Shown: in pieces, positions 24,274-61,547 of the stretch
How positions within the stretch are numbered: the first letter of the stretch is position 1
How the letters are laid out: each line of letters begins with the position of its first letter
Program-made: the position numbers and the translations under genes
The notes under the pieces: model-generated
What the model was told of the DNA's origin: nothing
The model's input: the letters and a program-made list of their open reading frames with translations, nothing else
Database searches by the model: none
Assembly (NCBI GenBank): GCA_025594325.1
Contig: JANHCV010000006.1
Span: 1,488,001 to 1,552,000, forward strand
Reading direction: 5' to 3'
DNA from: Blastocladiella emersonii ATCC 22665
Lineage: Eukaryota > Fungi > Blastocladiomycota
Length of the DNA: 64,000 bases

Positions 24274-26252
24274 CTACTTCCGCGCACTCGGCGCCCGCGC
24301 GACGCTCACAGGCGTCGGCGACGACGACGCGACGACGTTGGCCGCGACCATGGCGAGCTTGCGGTTGACGGCGGCGTCGAGGTCGGCGACGGCGGGTTCG
24401 GCCATGGGGAACAGGTTGCCCTCGAGGAGCAGCCGCAGCAGGCCGTGCCGCGGACGGTCGCGCAGCGCTGCGTCGCCGTACGCGTTGGTCGTCACCATGT
24501 GCTTGTCGGCGGGCACCTGGTCGAGGATCGCGTCGGCGAACAGCTTGCACACTAGTTTTGGGAAAGTCAGTGCGCGTCGTCGAGGACGCGGAGACCACCA
24601 AACCGTACCGCTGGCGCTCAGCTTGTTGTGGCTCAGGTTGAGGTGCGTGAGCGTGCGGTTGCCCCACGCGAAGAAGGCGCCGCCGGCCTCGAACATGTCG
24701 AGGTCGATGCCCGGTGGCACCGCAATCGCCTCGACCACCTCCTCGGGCGTCTCGTCGGGCACCATGAGCTCCTCGGCGGCCGCCGCCGCCCCGCGCTTCC
24801 CGCCCGCCTGCTTCTTGCCGCCCGCCGCGCTCGCTGCCGCGCCCGAGCCGGGCGTCGCGGGCGCCGACGGTTTCTTCTTCCCGCCCGCCCCCGCCCCCGC
24901 GCCGCTGCCGCCGCCCGTCGCGAAGGCGGTCGAGCCGCTCGACAGGTCCGGGTTCGACGTGTTCCCCGTGGCGGACTTGGCCGACGACGCGCCTTTGCCG
25001 GCGGCGCCCGCACCGGCTTTCCCGGCCGCAGCGCCGGACCCAGCGGCCCCGCCTGCGGCGGCGGCACCGGCCTTGCCCTTGCCCGCTTTGTCCTCGGCCG
25101 ACCCGCCGCGCGCGGTGCCCGGCTTGCCGGTCTTCTTCTTGGCCGTCTGCTCCTGCAGGAGCAGCTACACGCATCGTTCGTTCGTCAGTCGCGCAGATCA
25201 TGCTATCACTACACAATGCGTACGCTCTCCTCCTCCGCGACCTTGATCCGCTCGAGCTCCGCGTAATACTTCCGCCTCACCGCCGCCTCATCATTCGCGA
25301 GCGGCTGGCGGGACAACGCGCGCGCAATCGCCCCCGCAGCCTCGTCCGTCAGCAGGTTCCCTGCGAGCGACAGTGCGACGAGCGCCGTGTTCCGGACCAG
25401 GGCCTCGGCCAACGCTTCCGCCCCGGCGCGCGCGATCCGATTCCGCGCCAGGTGCAGCGTCTTGAGCGCGCGGTTCGCGCGCAGGTTCGCGGCGAGCGCG
25501 GACGCCGCGGCGTCGCCCAGCGCGTTGCCGCGCAGCGAGACCAGGCCGAGGAGCGACGTGTCCGGGTGGATCAGCGCGGACCACGCGGACGCGACGGTGT
25601 CGGCGGGACCGTCGACCGGGTTGTGGTCGAGGAACAGCACCCGCACGCCCGTCGTCGGGAGCAGGGACGCGAGGGATTGCACGTCTGCGAGCGACAGGGC
25701 GCACCCGAGCAGGCGCAGCTCCACGACGCTCGGCTCGTGCGGCAGCGCGGCCCCGATCGCCGACAGCGAGTGTGCGGGCAGACGCACGTGTCGCGCCTGC
25801 AGCGACCGCAGCGCGCCCGTCACGGGGGAGGTAGGGGAGGATGCGGAGGTGCCCGCCACGGGGCTCGCGGCGGCCGCGGCGGTCGGTGAGGTCGGCGGGG
25901 TGTCGGCCGCGGGAAGGATCCCGAGCGGGGTGCCGAACAGGCCCGAGGTGCCCACGTCGTCGGTGCTGCCTGGCGGGAGCGCGAGCGAGGCCAGCTCGCA
26001 CCGCGTCAGGTGCAGGCACGGCGCGTAGACGTGCCGCGGGCGGAGCGGTGGGCTGGTTGAGCCGGGTTGCGTCGTGTTCGAGAACTCGGGCAGGACTGTG
26101 GAGAAGGGTGATGTGAGTTGGGCGTGGTGGCGGCTACGGGGCGGTGTGCAAGACGCACCGAGGGCCGGCGGCGCATGGACCGGCAGCGGCGTGATGCCGT
26201 GCGCCGAGCAGTAGTTCGAGTACGTCGAGGCAAACATGCGTTCGGGTTCCAT
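24274..26252 (-). CDS. LRRC71-like leucine-rich repeat protein (cilium/flagellum-associated family)
   Basis: Introns 26158..26096, 25223..25165 and 24608..24552. RI-like LRRs (SLRGNALGD, HLARNRI, SLAGNLL), PLANDEAAVRRK segment, K/G/A-rich linker and C-terminal GNRTLTHLNLSHN...LLRLLLEGNLF resemble LRRC71. Confidence 0.65.
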
Positions 26253-28029: not shown

Positions 28030-28399
28030 TACAAAGGGGGGTTGCAACGCAGAACAGAAAAACGCGAGACGAGAGACGCGAAGGGGAGCCGGCGTGATGT
28101 CAGGTGATGGATCAGCCGCCCGCTCGGGTTCCCGCGTTCGCGCGGCCCGCGGCTGCTGCGCGTTCCCAGCGCCGCGCCGGCCACCGCCCCCCTCTCATCT
28201 GCCCCCTCCCGCCCGCCCACACCGACCGCACCGCCCGCAACTTGCGTCAACGGCCCCCGCACGCCGCGCCGGTCCCGTTGCACCCGGTCGCGCCCTCCCG
28301 CCCGCGCCAACCCCGACCGACCCACCCCCTGCCGATCCCGACCGCCATCACATCGACCCCCGCGACCCGCGACCGCGCCCCGCCACTCCCCGCAACGCG

Positions 28400-31300
28400 A
28401 TGCTCAAGCACGCCGCTGTGTCGCGCAAGGCTGCCGCAGCCGCCAGCGCCGCATCGAGCGGGTCCGCGCCGACGGCGGCGCGCCTGGCGACGCCGACGCG
28501 CGCGCCGCCGCTCGACCTCGGCGCCGTCAACGCCGACTACGTGTCCCTGCCCAGCAGCACGTTCGTCCACGAGGGCGTCACCCACTGCCCCATCTACTAC
28601 CCGTCGCTCGACGAGTTCTCGGACCCGCTCGCCTACATCAGCAAGATCCGCCCCGAGGCCGAGAAGGCGGGGATCTGCAAGATCGTGCCGCCGCGCGAGT
28701 GGAGTCCTGGCTTCGCGATTGACACGGAGGTGCGCTTGCTTGCTACTCATCCCGCTGCGTGACTCGTGTGCCTGACCATCGCACCTCATAGACGTTCCGG
28801 TTCCGCACGCGCAAGATGCCGCTCAACGAGATGGAGGGCGCGTCGCGCGCGTCGCTCACCTTCCTCGAGACGCTGCAAAAGTTCCACGCGCTCATGGGCC
28901 ACCCAATGACGCACATGCCCGTCATCCAGCGCCAGCCCGTCGACCTGCGCGCGCTCCGCGCCGAGGTCCACAAGCGCGGCGGCCACGCCCGCGTCTCGGA
29001 GCTGCGCAAGTGGTCCGAGGTCGGCAAGGCCCTCGGCTACAAGTTCAACCACTCGCTCGCCAACCACCTCAAGCAGCACTTCCTCAAGTACATTGACCCC
29101 TTTGACCGCTACATGGCCTCGTCCGACGACGGGACTGGGACCAACGCCGACGGTACCGCCGCCGGTGAGGGCGGCTCCGGCGGCGACGGGTCGACGACGC
29201 CGCAGGAGAAGCTCCAGAAGATCAACGAGGTCGTCCTCCCCACCACGGGCGCCGCCGCCAAGCTCACCGCCGCCCTGTCGGCCGCTACCGAGGCCCTCAA
29301 CCACGGCAGCTCGTCCGCCGCCGCTGCCGCGACCGCCGGATCGCCTGCGCCGGCTTCCGCGGCCGGGATCGAGGACGACGTCTACTCGGCGGCCGCCGCT
29401 GCGCCCATTGCCGACGACGCGTCCGAGACCGCTTCCGCCGACCCTGCCGCCGCCGCCTCGGGCGAGCCCGCTGCCGAGCCCACCGGCGTCATGACGCGCC
29501 GCCGCACCGGCACCCGCGCCAGCACCCGCACCCAGGAGTTCCTGCAGGCCGAGGCCGCCGCCGCCGGCTCGTCCGCGGCTCCCTCGGCCGCCTCGAGCGC
29601 GACCAGCTCGCCCAACAAGCGCACCTCGTCGCGCATGTCGGCCGCGCAAAAGGCCGCCATCGCCGCGGCGGCCACGGCGGGGACCGGGTCGACCAAGGCC
29701 GGGTACCGTGTGCCGCCCGAGGCGCTGATCCCGCGCGTCCCGCTGCCCGACGGGTACAAGCCCGTGGCCGGGTCCGAGCTGTGCGAGACGTGCGGGCACG
29801 GCCACAACCCGCAGCTCATGGTCGTGTGCGACGACTGCGGGCGCGGCTTCCACGCCTTCTGCCTCACGCCGCCGCTCGCCGTGCACCCGCGGTCCCTGTC
29901 CGAGTGGTACTGCACCAAGTGCGTGCGCGAGGTCGGCACCGATTTCGGGTTCGAGGACGGCGACGAGCACTCGCTCGCCGAGTTCGCGGCCAAGGCCAAC
30001 CAGTTCAAGGCCGACTGGTTCGCGCAGCCCGGGCGCGCGCAGGGCGACCCCGCCGCACACGGGCTCGGCGCCAACGACCGCAAGCTGTTTGTCACCGAGG
30101 AGGAGGTGGAGCGCGAGTTCTGGCGCATCGTCGAGTCGCCGTACGCCATGGAGTCGGTCGAGGTCGAGTACGGCGCCGACCTGCACACCACGGTCCACGG
30201 GTCCGGGTTCCCCGTCCGCGAGCGCGACCCGAACCACCCGTACGTCGACAACCCCTTCAACCTCAACGTGCTCCCGCTCGTCCGCGACTCGCTGCTGCGG
30301 CACGTCGCCCGCGATATCTCGGGCGTGGTCGTGCCGTGGCTGTACATCGGCATGGCCTTCGCCACCTTCTGCTGGCACGCCGAGGACCACTACTGCTACA
30401 GCGTCAACTACCAGCACTGGGGCGACACCAAGACGTGGTACGGCGTGTCGGCGGCCAACGCGGGCAAGCTCGAGGAGTGCATGCGGCGCGAGGCGCCCGA
30501 CCTGTTCGCCAAGAACCCGGACCTCCTGTTCCACATCACCACCATGCTCAGCCCCGCCAAACTCATCGAGGCCGGGTGCCCCGTGGTCGCGTGCCACCAG
30601 CGCGCCGGCGAGTTCGTCGTCACCTTCCCGCAGGCGTACCACGGCGGGTTCAACCAGGGGTTCAACTGCAACGAGGCCGTCAACTTTGCGCCCGTCGACT
30701 GGCTCCCCTTCGGCAAGGCGTGCGTCCAGCGGTACCGCGAGTTCGGCAAGGCCCCCTGCTTCTCGCACGACGAGCTCCTCATGGCCGTCGCCCTCGCCGA
30801 GGGACACGAGTTCCGCACCGCCACCTGGCTCGCGCCGTACCTCGCCGAGCTCGTCAGCGAGTGCCGCGCCCAGTGGGACGCGATCGCGGCGTGCGGCGAC
30901 CGCTGGAAGGTCGAGTACCTCGCCAACGCACAGGCGACCTGCGACACCCAGTGCGCACAGTGTAACGCGTTCTGCTGGTTCGCCGCCGTCCAGTGCCCCG
31001 AGCACGGAAAGGTGTACTGCGTCGACCACGCGGCCGCGTGCTGCGGCGGTACCGCGGTGACCGCGACCGCGACCACGTCGGCCGCGACGGCCATGGATGT
31101 CGACGGCGCGCCCGACTTGGCTGTTCCCGCCGCCCCCGCGCCCGCCGCCGCCGGTGCCAACGGGCCGCAGCAGGTGGTGTCGGTCCGGTACCGCCTCGAC
31201 GCGCTGCAGCGCATCGTGCAGGCCATCGACGAGGTGGCCAAGATCCCGACGCGGTGGGTGCAGCGGCTCGAGGCCACCATGCTCAAGCACACCAACGCCG

Positions 31301-57974: not shown

Positions 57975-58346
57975 GGTTGCAGGTATGGTGCGGGGCGGGT
58001 GCTGCGGGCGGACGGCGGGGAGTAGACGGGCAGCGTCTCCACGGGCGACGGCGTTACGGCGGTCGGGGCGGGGCGGCAGCGGGTCGAATGGGACGGCGGC
58101 CGCGGCGGCGTGGCGGCGTGCCCGCTTGCATCGGCAGACTTTTTGCGCAGGCCTGTTGTGCCACGCGACATCACCTGACCGGCCCACTTCGCATCGGCCG
58201 CTGTCTCGCGTTTCAGACGCGTGTGGGCGTGCGAGACACTTTTCTCCCCTCGCCTACCGCAACGGCCGAAGCAAACAGCTCGCGTCCATTGACAGATAAT
58301 GAATAATGATAGTCGTCATCACAAACACACACAAATACTTCACATC

Positions 58347-61274
58347 CTACCCTCGCCGCGGGTCCGCCGGCACGGGAGCCAGGGACCCAGTGCTCGCCAC
58401 GCTCCCGCGGCGCGGGTCGAACGCCACACCGCCACCGCCGTTACCGGCCATGCGCGGGTCATGCCGCGGTGGCGGCGCCGGGTAGTCGCGGTCGCGGTCG
58501 CGCTCGCCGCCACCGTACCCGAACCCGTCCGCGGCGGGCGGCGCCGCTGGTGGCCGCGGGAGGCCCGGCACGCCGTACGTACGCGCGCGGTCGTCGCCGT
58601 TCCCGTTGCCGTTACCGAACGCGTGGCCGTGGTGGTACCCACCGCCGTTGCCGTTCCCATCTGCGCCTCCGACGACAGGCTCAAAGTTGGCCCGCAGCCC
58701 GATCCCGCCGCCGGTCCCAGTCCCCGGCTCGGGGCGGTACTTTGGGTTGGCGAGCTTGAACCGCTTGATCTCGAGCGGGTCGATATCGGGTTCCTCGACC
58801 GTGATCCCGCCGCGCAGCGGGCCACTGCGGATCCCGCCCGCGGCGCTCGTCATCATGAACTTGTGGTCGTGGCGGTCCATTTGCCGGTCAATGTCGAGCA
58901 CCGACACGCCCGCGTCGTAGTCGAAGATGGGTTTCGGGCCGAACCCGCAGCCCCACTTGACCTTGAGCAGGGTGGTTTCGCCCGACGGGAGGGAGTAGTC
59001 GTAGTGGTCGAGCTGCTTGCGCGCCTCGTTGGCCTCGCGCCGCGTGTGCATCTTGAGGAAGCAGTTGAACTTGCTGTAGTTGATCTACATGGCCGTGGCG
59101 GGGAATCGGGGTGTGAGTGGCGTGGTTCTCTCGTGTCGCGTTGGCGCGGTGCGGGGTGGGCGATTGGTTCCTGCACTCGCGGTTGCTCGGTGAGCTTCAC
59201 GACTCAGAGAGAGAGAGGGCGCCGACGGGACACGGTGGGACGATGGAGTGAACCAAGATTTGCAATTTGAGCGACATGACGCGTGCGCGTAGAACGCGCA
59301 AGTGGTCGCGCGCGTGTAGGAGGGAGTGCAGGAAACAAGAGTACGCGGCGCGCAAGCGCGAGTGCCGGCCGACGCTGGAGTGCGAGTGAGTAGGAAGACA
59401 GAAACGGACCATGACCGAGGTCACCTTGCCAAACTGGCCGAACAGCTGCTCGAGCATGGACCGCGAAATGTCCTTGACGATGCCGCCAATGTACAGCGTG
59501 CGCGACATGACTACACGATTGGGTGTGCGTTGTGCGTGTGGAGATGTACGGTGGGGAGCGGGGACGCGAGTCGTGCGTGTACAACGTGGCGGGTTCACGT
59601 TGGGTGCAGCGAGTTGAAACCGATCGAAATAGAGCAGCGACAGCAGCAGCAGAAAACCGAGTACGAGTTATGCATGTATCGCACCAGGGAGTTACAGCGA
59701 GTTCAAGTCGAGCAAGTCGGGTGGACGGGACGAAGTCGAGTGCGCGGTCGAGGTCGCGCCGAGGGTTCAAGTTGTACGAGGTAATACAGGGAGGCGAGTC
59801 CGTTAGTCTCCATCCACTCCCCACACTCCACCACCAAGGAACCGTACCCTTGATCTGGTTCGGCGCACACCCGCCCTCGATCTGGATCCACGGCCCGTCG
59901 GGCTTGTTGACGGGCGTGGCGCGCCAGTTGACCTGGAGCGAGTCCTCGCACGCGCGGAGCTCCTCGGGCGACATGGCCGTGAGCGGGTTGGGCCGGTTGC
60001 CGCCGGGTCCGCCCGCACCCGCACCGGCACCGTACCGGCGCGGCGGTGGCGGCGCGCTGCCGCCGAACGCGGGGTCCGACTCGAAGCCGGCGGGCAGGTT
60101 CGGCATGTGGCCGTGGTCATGACCATGGCCGTGGCCGCCGTACGCGTTGGGCGTGCCGGTGCTACCGTTCCCGGTGCCGAACGGCATCCCCGCGGCGGCG
60201 GACCCGCGCTGTTGGTGGTGCTGCTGGTTGAACACGGCGGGGAAGTGGGCGGGCGAGTGCTGATGGTTCTGGTTCTGCTGGAGCTGGGCCGCGGCAACGG
60301 CGAGGTGGGCGAGCGGGGCGAGCACGTCTGGGTTAGCCGCGCCGCCGGCCGCCGCGGCGAGGTTGGCGAGGCCGGGGACGAGCTGCTGGAGCGCGGCGAG
60401 GTTGAGCCCGCCCAGCGGGTTGGCCTCGGCTGGCGCGCCACCGCCACCGGCGCCGGCGAGCGGGTTGAGCGGGGCGCCCGGGGCGGGCGAGTTGGCGTGC
60501 TGGGCCTTGATGGTGCTGCCGAGGTTGGCGAGCATGGACGAGAGGTCGGGCGGATTGGCGGCGGGCACGGTGGGGGCGGCCGGGTTGGCGAGCGAGCCGA
60601 GCGACAGGGCCAGGGCGCTGGTGTCGATGATGGGCGCAGCGCCGGCGGCGACGGGCGCGGCGGGGACGGCACCGGGGGTCACGCCCGGGATGATGATCTG
60701 CGGGATGGCCGTCGGCGCGACTAGACGTGGGAGACACGCGGGTGAGCACCAGGCCACGACCTTCGACGACAGAGGGCGTACCAGGCTGCACGGGGGTAGC
60801 CGCACTCGAAGAAGCCGACGTCTCGTGGCGGACCCACTTGGCCTCGGCCTTGTCGAGGAACTCGGCGGGGAACACGTTGCGCTCGCGCCAGACGTCGATG
60901 AGGCGCTTGATGCGTTGGCGGTCCTTTTCGGGGCACTTGACGAGCTCGGCCGTGAGCTGGGGCAGGTTGGCCTCGAAGCGCGTCACGTAGGGGTCGTCCT
61001 TGGGCTTGCGCTTGCCGTCGGCGAGGGCGGCACGGCAGATCGAGTCGACAAAGTACAGGCCCGACAGCTTGTACTCTGGCGGCGCGCGCTTGATGAAGGT
61101 GGCGACCAGGTGCACCACGGCCTTGTAGTGCTCGCGGTGCCGCATCGCGAGCTTGGTCAGCGCCGCCACGCGCGACGCCGACGCCGGCGCGCGCGACTGC
61201 AGCACGGCCGACAGCTCGGCCTCGAACGGCGCGAGGTCGCGGATGTTGGTCGGGTCGATGACGGGCGGATCCAT
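58347..61274 (-). CDS. NRD1: Nrd1/Seb1-type CID-RRM transcription termination factor
   Basis: Exons 61274..60782, 60720..59848, 59510..59410 and 59084..58347. CID (YKLSGLYFVDSICR), then the Nrd1/Seb1 split RRM: NQIK-VMSRTLYIGG ... FLKMHTRREA ... KVKWGCGFGP ... GITVEEPDI. Confidence 0.9.
59511..59847 (-). other. 337-nt intron with a distal branch point (GACTAAC, 59808..59802) and a 295-nt AG-free tract
   Basis: Donor GTACGG at 59847. No CT on the + strand (no AG on the sense strand) from 59513 to 59807. Acceptor TAG at 59513..59511 restores the conserved IKVMSRTL frame. Confidence 0.8.
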
Positions 61275-61547
61275 GGCGTTGATGCGTTGCGTTGCGGGCG
61301 CGTTGCGTTTGCGGGGAGGGCCGGCTCGATGCGAGCAGGCCGGTGCGAAATGAGCGGCCGGACGGGCTTCGAAGCCAGCGAGCGAGCATCACGTTGGTTT
61401 TGGGATAAGTGGCAGGCGCGCCAGCCGACGCGATCGCCCCACGCGTTTTGCTCGGCCGGCTCCTCCTTGGGGCGCCCCCCGTTTCCGAGCTCTCCCTCCC
61501 CCCGTTCCGACCGTACCACGCCCCGCATTACGCTACGCATCAACACC

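Follow-up and report, generated by a model that had tools for sequence, protein, structure and literature searches.

In fission-yeast TER1, a strong branch consensus is combined with a long distance between the branch point and the acceptor, which is said to slow the second step of splicing. In regulated animal exons, distant branch points marked by AG exclusion zones are textbook knowledge: no AG occurs from the far-upstream branch to the acceptor (Gooding et al. 2006, PMC1431707). Long branch-to-acceptor distances, of up to 166-471 nt, are also found in Saccharomycotina (COF1, UBC13 and K. lactis ACT), where AGs are present but masked in a stable stem, which brings branch and acceptor closer together, and where different genera do not share the arrangement (Gahura et al. 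2011, PMC3239191). Here we describe an intron with a comparably long distance in a Nrd1/Seb1-family gene of the fungus Blastocladiella emersonii ATCC 22665 (Blastocladiomycota), located on the minus strand of a 64,000-nt stretch of contig JANHCV010000006.1 (positions 1,488,001 to 1,552,000; assembly GCA_025594325.1), hereafter the window. In contrast to the yeast introns, AGs are excluded from it rather than masked, and the arrangement is kept across genera and old paralogues. This intron, the second of the gene, is in our view probably of the distant-branch-point type, with an AG exclusion zone under purifying selection. The kind is already known; as judged from the layout of the motifs, what is new is an animal-style distant-branch intron in an early-diverging fungal lineage and in a Nrd1/Seb1 gene.

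A search of the library with the peptide encoded by exon 4 returned the 734-residue protein KAI9179169.1 of B. emersonii ATCC 22665 at 100% identity, and the four-exon structure obtained by exact protein-to-genome mapping gives this deposited protein exactly (Table 1). Pfam places a CID (PF04818, E = 5.9e-25) on exon 1, an RRM (PF00076, E = 1.7e-5) on exon 3 and the Nrd1/Seb1 domain 2 (Nrd1-Seb1_dom2, PF21380, E = 3.3e-13) on exon 4, and all three are common to the orthologues. From this combination of domains the gene is identified as the Nrd1/Seb1 orthologue of B. emersonii, in agreement with the name given to it in the original prediction, which had been made from the letters of the window alone. 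The same prediction had placed intron 2 between the CID-containing exons and the RRM, and the domain positions bear this out. More precisely, the intron splits a codon two residues before RNP2 of the RRM (...NQIK/V/MSRTLYIGG).

Table 1. Features of the B. emersonii Nrd1/Seb1 gene, in window coordinates; exon boundaries are those of the exact protein-to-genome map
Feature	Positions	Strand	Details	Basis
Nrd1/Seb1-family gene	58347..61274	-	4 exons, 734 aa	Pfam matches; exact exon map; KAI9179169.1
Exon 1	60782..61274	-	CID domain	Pfam, protein-to-genome map
Intron 1	60721..60781	-	ordinary, 61 nt; GCTCAC 22 nt from acceptor	
Exon 2	59848..60720	-	low-complexity linker, ends ...IEGGCAPNQIK	exon map
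Intron 2	59511..59847	-	337 nt, phase 1, GTACGG...GTGTAG; probable distant-branch-point intron	exon map
G-rich segment	59809..59841	-	between donor and branch motif; 3 internal AGs, all GAG	
Branch consensus GACTAAC	59802..59808	-	intron positions 40-46; predicted branch A at 59803	
Putative AG exclusion zone	59513..59807	-	295 nt; 0 sense-strand AG, ~10 expected	
Acceptor AG	59511..59512	-	first AG downstream of branch motif, context GUGUAG	
Exon 3	59410..59510	-	101 nt, N-terminal half of RRM	exon map
Intron 3	59085..59409	-	325 nt, conventional; internal control	
Exon 4	58347..59084	-	rest of RRM, Nrd1/Seb1 domain 2, Gly/Asn-rich tail, stop codon	

Sense-strand AGs occur in intron 2 at positions 21, 30, 39 and 336 only. 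The perfect GACTAAC close to the donor, the AG-free stretch that follows it and the four UGUA words on which the original prediction was built were all recovered, the UGUA words at intron positions 60, 152, 265 and 333. The CTAAC at position 42, within the predicted branch sequence, is the single YTNAY pentamer of the whole intron.

Introns of B. emersonii known from expressed sequence tags measure 55-333 nt, mostly 60-79 nt, and carry a CTAAC-like branch site; heat or cadmium stress inhibits splicing in this species (PMC2773782). For comparison within the window, introns were delimited by codon-bias segmentation, joining adjacent coding blocks; in the ~14 confident ones, including introns of 240 nt and 371-473 nt, CTGAC, CTCAC or CTAAC lies 16-31 nt from the acceptor. 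Since typical introns are short and have their branch near the acceptor, intron 2 is unusual in both length and build. Intron 3 of the same gene holds 9 AGs and has ACTCAC ~28 nt from its acceptor.

With 296 nt, the AG-free run of intron 2 exceeds every other on both strands of the window (128 kb of strand), the next-longest measuring 238 and 223 nt. From its own base composition the tract would be expected to contain 9.6-10 AGs, and AG was present in every one of 100,000 mononucleotide shuffles. GA, for which the same number would be expected, was found 11-12 times. The caution originally expressed that C-richness might account for part of the effect was thus not upheld, because the shuffles never lost all of their AGs and GA was present at undiminished frequency; together with the neighbouring introns, these counts rule out base composition as the cause. 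The two next-longest runs, at 28169-28406 (plus strand) and 25463-25685 (minus strand), were rejected as introns, the former being a C-rich upstream region and the latter coding sequence. The 238-nt plus-strand run is extremely C-rich, lies directly upstream of an ATG at ~28401 and is probably a 5' untranslated region or promoter.

To compare orthologous introns, we fetched the orthologue loci, mapped their exons exactly and counted AG from 10 nt after the predicted branch A. The focal set comprised eight genes, namely that of B. emersonii and seven other blastoclad genes with an intron before a 101-nt exon (Table 2). Allomyces holds two old paralogues, of which the a type was represented by A. 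javanicus, A. arbusculus and A. macrogynus and the b type by A. javanicus and A. macrogynus; a further gene came from a metagenome contig (L010). In the seven relatives, the branch motif stands 42-139 nt from the donor and is followed by 167-868 nt without a usable AG, where 8-42 would be expected. The retention of an AG-free tract in orthologous introns despite sequence divergence, which had been proposed as a check, was therefore found in seven further genes.

Table 2. The intron preceding the 101-nt exon in the eight focal genes (AG counted from 10 nt after the predicted branch A; for L010, in the 868 nt that follow the AG at position 68)
Gene	Intron length (nt)	Branch motif@intron position	AG observed	AG expected
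B. emersonii	337	ACTAAC@41	0	9.6
B. britannica	400	ACTAAT@139	1 (GAG)	12.7
A. javanicus-a	225	ACTGAC@42	0	8.1
A. arbusculus-a	225	GCTCAC@43	1 (GAG)	7.7
A. macrogynus-a	230	GCTGAC@43	0	7.9
A. javanicus-b	470	ACTGAC@60	0	16.8
A. macrogynus-b	482	ACTGAC@89	0	15.0
L010 (41%-GC metagenome contig), L010:1191-2128, GC-AG intron	938	TCTAAC@60	0 in 868 nt	~42

The depletion is confined to the region past the branch motif and to AG itself. AGs are tolerated on the donor side of the motif and in the 10 nt that follow it (4-9 nt after it in A. macrogynus-b and L010), where they are too close to the branch to act as acceptors. In L010, for instance, AGs occur at intron positions 34, 42, 50 and 68, and none follows before the acceptor. 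These details agree with a first-AG rule, as do the sole two internal exceptions, both GAG. No focal tract has fewer GAs than expected. The downstream introns of the same genes behave as ordinary sequence: that of L010 (738 nt) contains 37 AGs against 40 expected, and those of the b-type genes (395 and 409 nt) are AG-rich. In these genes, none of the 38 non-focal introns has an AG-free stretch of more than 95 nt ahead of its acceptor, as compared with 143-869 nt in 7 of the 8 focal introns.

Anatomy, AG depletion and their conservation can be read directly from these sequences, whereas the use of the upstream branch and a first-AG rule are what we infer from them. A different reading, in which a weak non-consensus branch near the acceptor is in use and the AG-free tract is due to chance or to a constraint of another kind, is very improbable in our view. 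It draws on the weak YTNAY motifs that L010 and some Allomyces introns have at 40-43 nt or 12 nt from the acceptor, and on the poor tolerance of budding yeast for long branch-to-acceptor distances (PMC3239191). Yet a proximal branch would put no selection on upstream AGs, and 167-868 nt are AG-free in about five independent lineages; in all cases the zone begins at the upstream branch motif, GA shows no depletion and AGs abound in the neighbouring introns. Moreover, a scan of the last 70 nt of the intron in B. emersonii and B. britannica found no YTNAY at all.

Several observations nevertheless weigh against a distant branch point. Its placement rests on motif positions and AG depletion. Weak YTNAY sequences (TTGAT, TTAAC, TTCAC) stand 40-43 nt from the acceptor in 4 of the 8 introns, and CTGAT or CTAAT occurs at a distance of 12 nt in two a-type introns, so a proximal branch could also serve in those genes. 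In S. cerevisiae, a branch-to-acceptor distance above ~55-120 nt needs a stabilising structure (PMC3239191), and a search of the focal tracts for excess folding stability over dinucleotide shuffles found none (z from -0.6 to +1.5). B. britannica and A. arbusculus each have one internal AG in the tract, both of them GAG; GAG is the least-used acceptor triplet. Finally, the Allomyces species are kin within each paralogue group, which reduces the eight genes to about five independent lineages.

The tracts were then considered for signs of selection. Focal introns show no raised sequence conservation over neighbouring introns in the Allomyces alignments: aligned identity is 79-82% for the a-type focal intron versus 73-82% for other introns, and 64% versus 63-79% for the b type. 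Between the b-type tracts, 129 of 347 aligned sites differ. Chance substitution to this extent would create ~12.6 new AGs, and in 0 of 20,000 simulations did the tract remain AG-free; the corresponding value for the a-type pair was 4.5%. Selection against AG is, by these simulations, ongoing in the tract. Because the tract drifts as its neighbours do and yet stays AG-free, the constraint falls on AG and the branch motif, not on the whole sequence. The tracts of B. emersonii, B. britannica, Allomyces-a, Allomyces-b and L010 are mutually unalignable and span 41-68% GC, so that the pattern is no artefact of composition or phylogeny.

The simplest account of all these features would be the following. 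U2 would pair with GACUAAC, the sole branch consensus, placing the branch A ~45 nt from the donor, a spacing like that in an ordinary 60-70-nt intron of B. emersonii. The 3' splice site would be the first usable AG downstream, 292 nt from the branch, and ligation of the exons would have to wait for several hundred bases of transcription. A new CAG, UAG or AAG in the tract would become a premature acceptor and shift the frame of the RRM; as such mutations would be spliced to and break the frame, they would be purged, and purifying selection would keep the whole tract free of AG.

The same comparison bears on the origin of the intron. The 101-nt exon, with introns at the same two positions, is also present in Sorochytrium and in the chytrid Synchytrium endobioticum, and both introns are missing from Chytridiales sp. 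JEL0842. In Sorochytrium and Synchytrium the upstream intron is of the ordinary kind, with 65 and 77 nt respectively, and these short introns at the same position suggest a 65-77-nt ancestral intron that was later expanded between branch and acceptor. The expansion probably took place in an ancestor of Blastocladiella and Allomyces, and the arrangement would have been retained since then while the sequence of the spacer drifted.

Exon 3 itself is constant in length in every orthologue with both flanking introns. From Synchytrium to Blastocladiella its 101 nt and the phases of the flanking introns are identical (counterparts at L001:3262-3362, L002:3063-3163, L003:3292-3392, L004:3414-3514, L012:2782-2882 and L010:2129-2229), and this RRM exon is an ancient exon unit. 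Both introns around it are oversized in B. emersonii, Allomyces-b and L010.

We looked for structures or hidden elements within intron 2. Folding of the whole intron showed no excess stability over dinucleotide shuffles (minimum free energy z of -0.49), and the predicted end-to-end distance was no shorter than in shuffles. A stabilising or bridging stem of the yeast type was rejected, given this lack of excess stability and the lack of AGs to mask. The C-rich 3' end of the intron can, in B. emersonii, pair with the G-rich segment on the donor side of the branch (best duplex -37.9 kcal/mol, at intron positions 282-321). This pairing follows from composition, and it was not relied on because the position of the best partner is not kept in the orthologues. 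An Rfam E-value scan of 58000-61500 returned no known RNA and no C/D or H/ACA boxes were seen by eye in intron 2, so that a hidden RNA gene was discarded. A nested intron (stwintron) was discarded as well, since the internal intron would require its own AG.

The closest likeness is to the animal distant-branch-point exons, such as alpha-tropomyosin exon 3 and PTB exon 11. As in these, a consensus branch stands at the upstream end of a long AG-free zone, no good branch motif lies near the acceptor (in B. emersonii) and the arrangement is conserved in orthologues. PTB exon 11 is similar also in being a small frame-shifting exon downstream of such a zone in the gene of an RNA-binding protein. The present intron differs from the animal set in its setting, a Nrd1/Seb1 gene of Blastocladiomycota, and in the extent of the zone, which reaches 868 nt in L010 compared with up to ~400-440 nt in the human set (PMC1431707). 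Any pyrimidine tract next to the branch is modest: in the 30 nt after the motif the pyrimidine fraction is 0.63 in B. emersonii, equal to the rest of the tract, and 0.57-0.80 in the orthologues, versus 0.51-0.58 for the rest of their tracts. Unlike the regulated animal exons, no regulator motif is conserved here, and the case is known from sequence alone.

The anatomy of the intron would allow a regulatory switch, and the original prediction had proposed one, in which the Nrd1/Seb1 protein binds UGUA/GUA words in its own intron and thereby causes first-step-only cleavage, early termination or exon skipping, as a form of negative autoregulation. We regard this as quite unlikely. In the B. emersonii tract there are indeed 4 UGUA against 0.9 expected and 7 GUA against 2.8, and the B. 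britannica tract has 4 GUA against 1.4. However, UGUA occurs 1, 0 and 1 times in the tracts of B. britannica, Allomyces a and Allomyces b, and both UGUA and GUA are at or below expectation in the two Allomyces paralogues. GUAG and AGUA are impossible inside an AG-free tract, and the focal intron, as noted, is no more conserved than its neighbours. No k-mer tested against dinucleotide shuffles was convincingly common to the lineages after correction for multiple testing. The proposed binding of the protein to its own intron thus loses its evidence, the UGUA excess being peculiar to B. emersonii.

The possible outcomes of such a switch were also considered. Skipping of exon 3 (101 nt) would shift the frame and leave a CID-only product in which 455 aa are followed by 65 aa read out of frame, and retention of intron 2 would give 455 aa with a 211-aa tail. 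The stop that follows exon skipping sits in the last exon, however, so exon-junction-dependent decay would not be expected. Release of the 5' exon after the first step, which had been suggested by analogy with TER1, is excluded as the main pathway, because the downstream exons with the RRM and domain 2 stay in frame and are conserved in all orthologues. The functional product of TER1 is the released 5' exon, whereas here ligation must be the main outcome.

Precedents do exist for regulation of this general type. Yeast Nrd1 autoregulates according to work cited in PMC11852746, vertebrate PCF11 controls its own expression via an intronic poly(A) site (PMC6458999), an AG exclusion zone of 381 nt precedes PTB exon 11, and the experimentally characterised distant-branch-point exons of animals are all alternatively spliced (PMC1431707). 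Our search of the literature on Seb1/Nrd1 introns and autoregulation, Allomyces branch points and fungal AG exclusion zones found nothing relevant. The general logic is not new, as PTB exon 11 illustrates.

An alternative that dispenses with a specific binding site is that the intron acts as a read-through gate. The branch would be recognised early, and full-length mRNA would be made only if RNA polymerase II (Pol II) escapes premature termination across the spacer. We think this improbable, if slightly less so than binding of the protein to its intron. Its extension, that the yield of mRNA would report the termination activity of the cell and that the device would be common to termination-factor genes, is to be taken as equally tentative. 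Such a gate would fit the length of the focal intron, which is 225-938 nt in 8 of 8 genes versus mostly 60-110 nt for introns in these fungi (PMC2773782), and the free drift of a spacer in which only length and AG absence are constrained. On the other hand, premature termination in any long intron would also destroy the transcript, and a distant branch is not needed for it.

Taken further, AG-free distant-branch introns in blastoclads might serve as a feedback device for Pol II termination factors, a proposal we consider doubtful. The spliceosome would commit at a branch ~45 nt into the intron, ligation would be possible only after 200-900 more bases had been transcribed, and less full-length mRNA would be obtained at high levels of termination activity or of the protein itself. 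Conservation of the device would go back beyond the split of Allomyces and Blastocladiella. Like yeast NRD1 attenuation and the intronic poly(A) site of vertebrate PCF11 (PMC6458999), the intron places a conserved and unusually long non-coding stretch in the early or middle part of a termination-factor transcript. In those systems it is termination or poly(A) signals that are conserved, whereas in intron 2 of the Nrd1/Seb1 gene, where no conserved signal of that kind was found, it is the absence of AG past the branch motif. If the link to termination-factor homeostasis were true, it would represent a new kind of coupling between splicing and termination.

Independently of these proposals, a distant branch point followed by an AG exclusion zone would make this an intron class in which any single AG-creating mutation breaks the gene, which matters for annotation and variant interpretation. 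The arrangement has long been kept in the gene of an essential termination factor, and also by both copies that arose from an old duplication. With zones up to 868 nt, about twice the longest human examples of the Gooding set, the first-AG rule would operate over very long distances in these fungi. Culturable Allomyces and Blastocladiella offer a tractable natural system for asking why the spliceosome would wait hundreds of bases from recognition of the branch to ligation of the exons.

Some further observations concern individual introns. In intron 3 of B. emersonii, a branch-like TACTCAC stands at intron positions 18-24 and is followed by an AG at 34. An in-frame alternative donor, GTGACC, lies at ~59424, 15 nt upstream of the intron, and with that AG would delimit a plausible 50-nt mini-intron. 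Intron 3 also contains a 171-nt AG-free run (59205-59375), the third longest on the minus strand of the window. In the focal intron of B. britannica (L001:2862-3261), the lone internal AG, at position 256, is found in GGAG/GTAATT, which resembles a regenerated 5' splice site, and CTCAT occurs 124 and 85 nt before the acceptor; from these motifs, removal of this intron in two steps (recursive splicing) is conceivable.

Donor sites and annotation also varied among the orthologues. The focal intron of L010 starts with GCATGT (L010:1191-1196), as noted for a GC-AG intron, and intron 2 of the three Allomyces a-type genes starts with GCACGT or GCGCGT (L002:2211-2216, L005:1707-1712, L006:1710-1715). 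As it is present in all three genes, the GC donor is conserved in this intron of the a type. In the A. macrogynus gene AMAG_06520, the annotated 85-nt intron 2 (L007:2105-2189) has a poor donor, GTTGCC, no branch motif and no counterpart in the b-type gene of A. javanicus; rather than being a real intron, it may be a device of the annotation.

A metagenome scan for further blastoclad orthologues matched only intron-less distant fungi. In Coelomomyces lativittatus (L008), the 101-nt exon is present and its downstream intron measures ~630 nt. Its upstream exon was sought in the 30%-GC draft assembly and was not found; the last 134 nt before the acceptor (L008:2812-2945) are AG-free.

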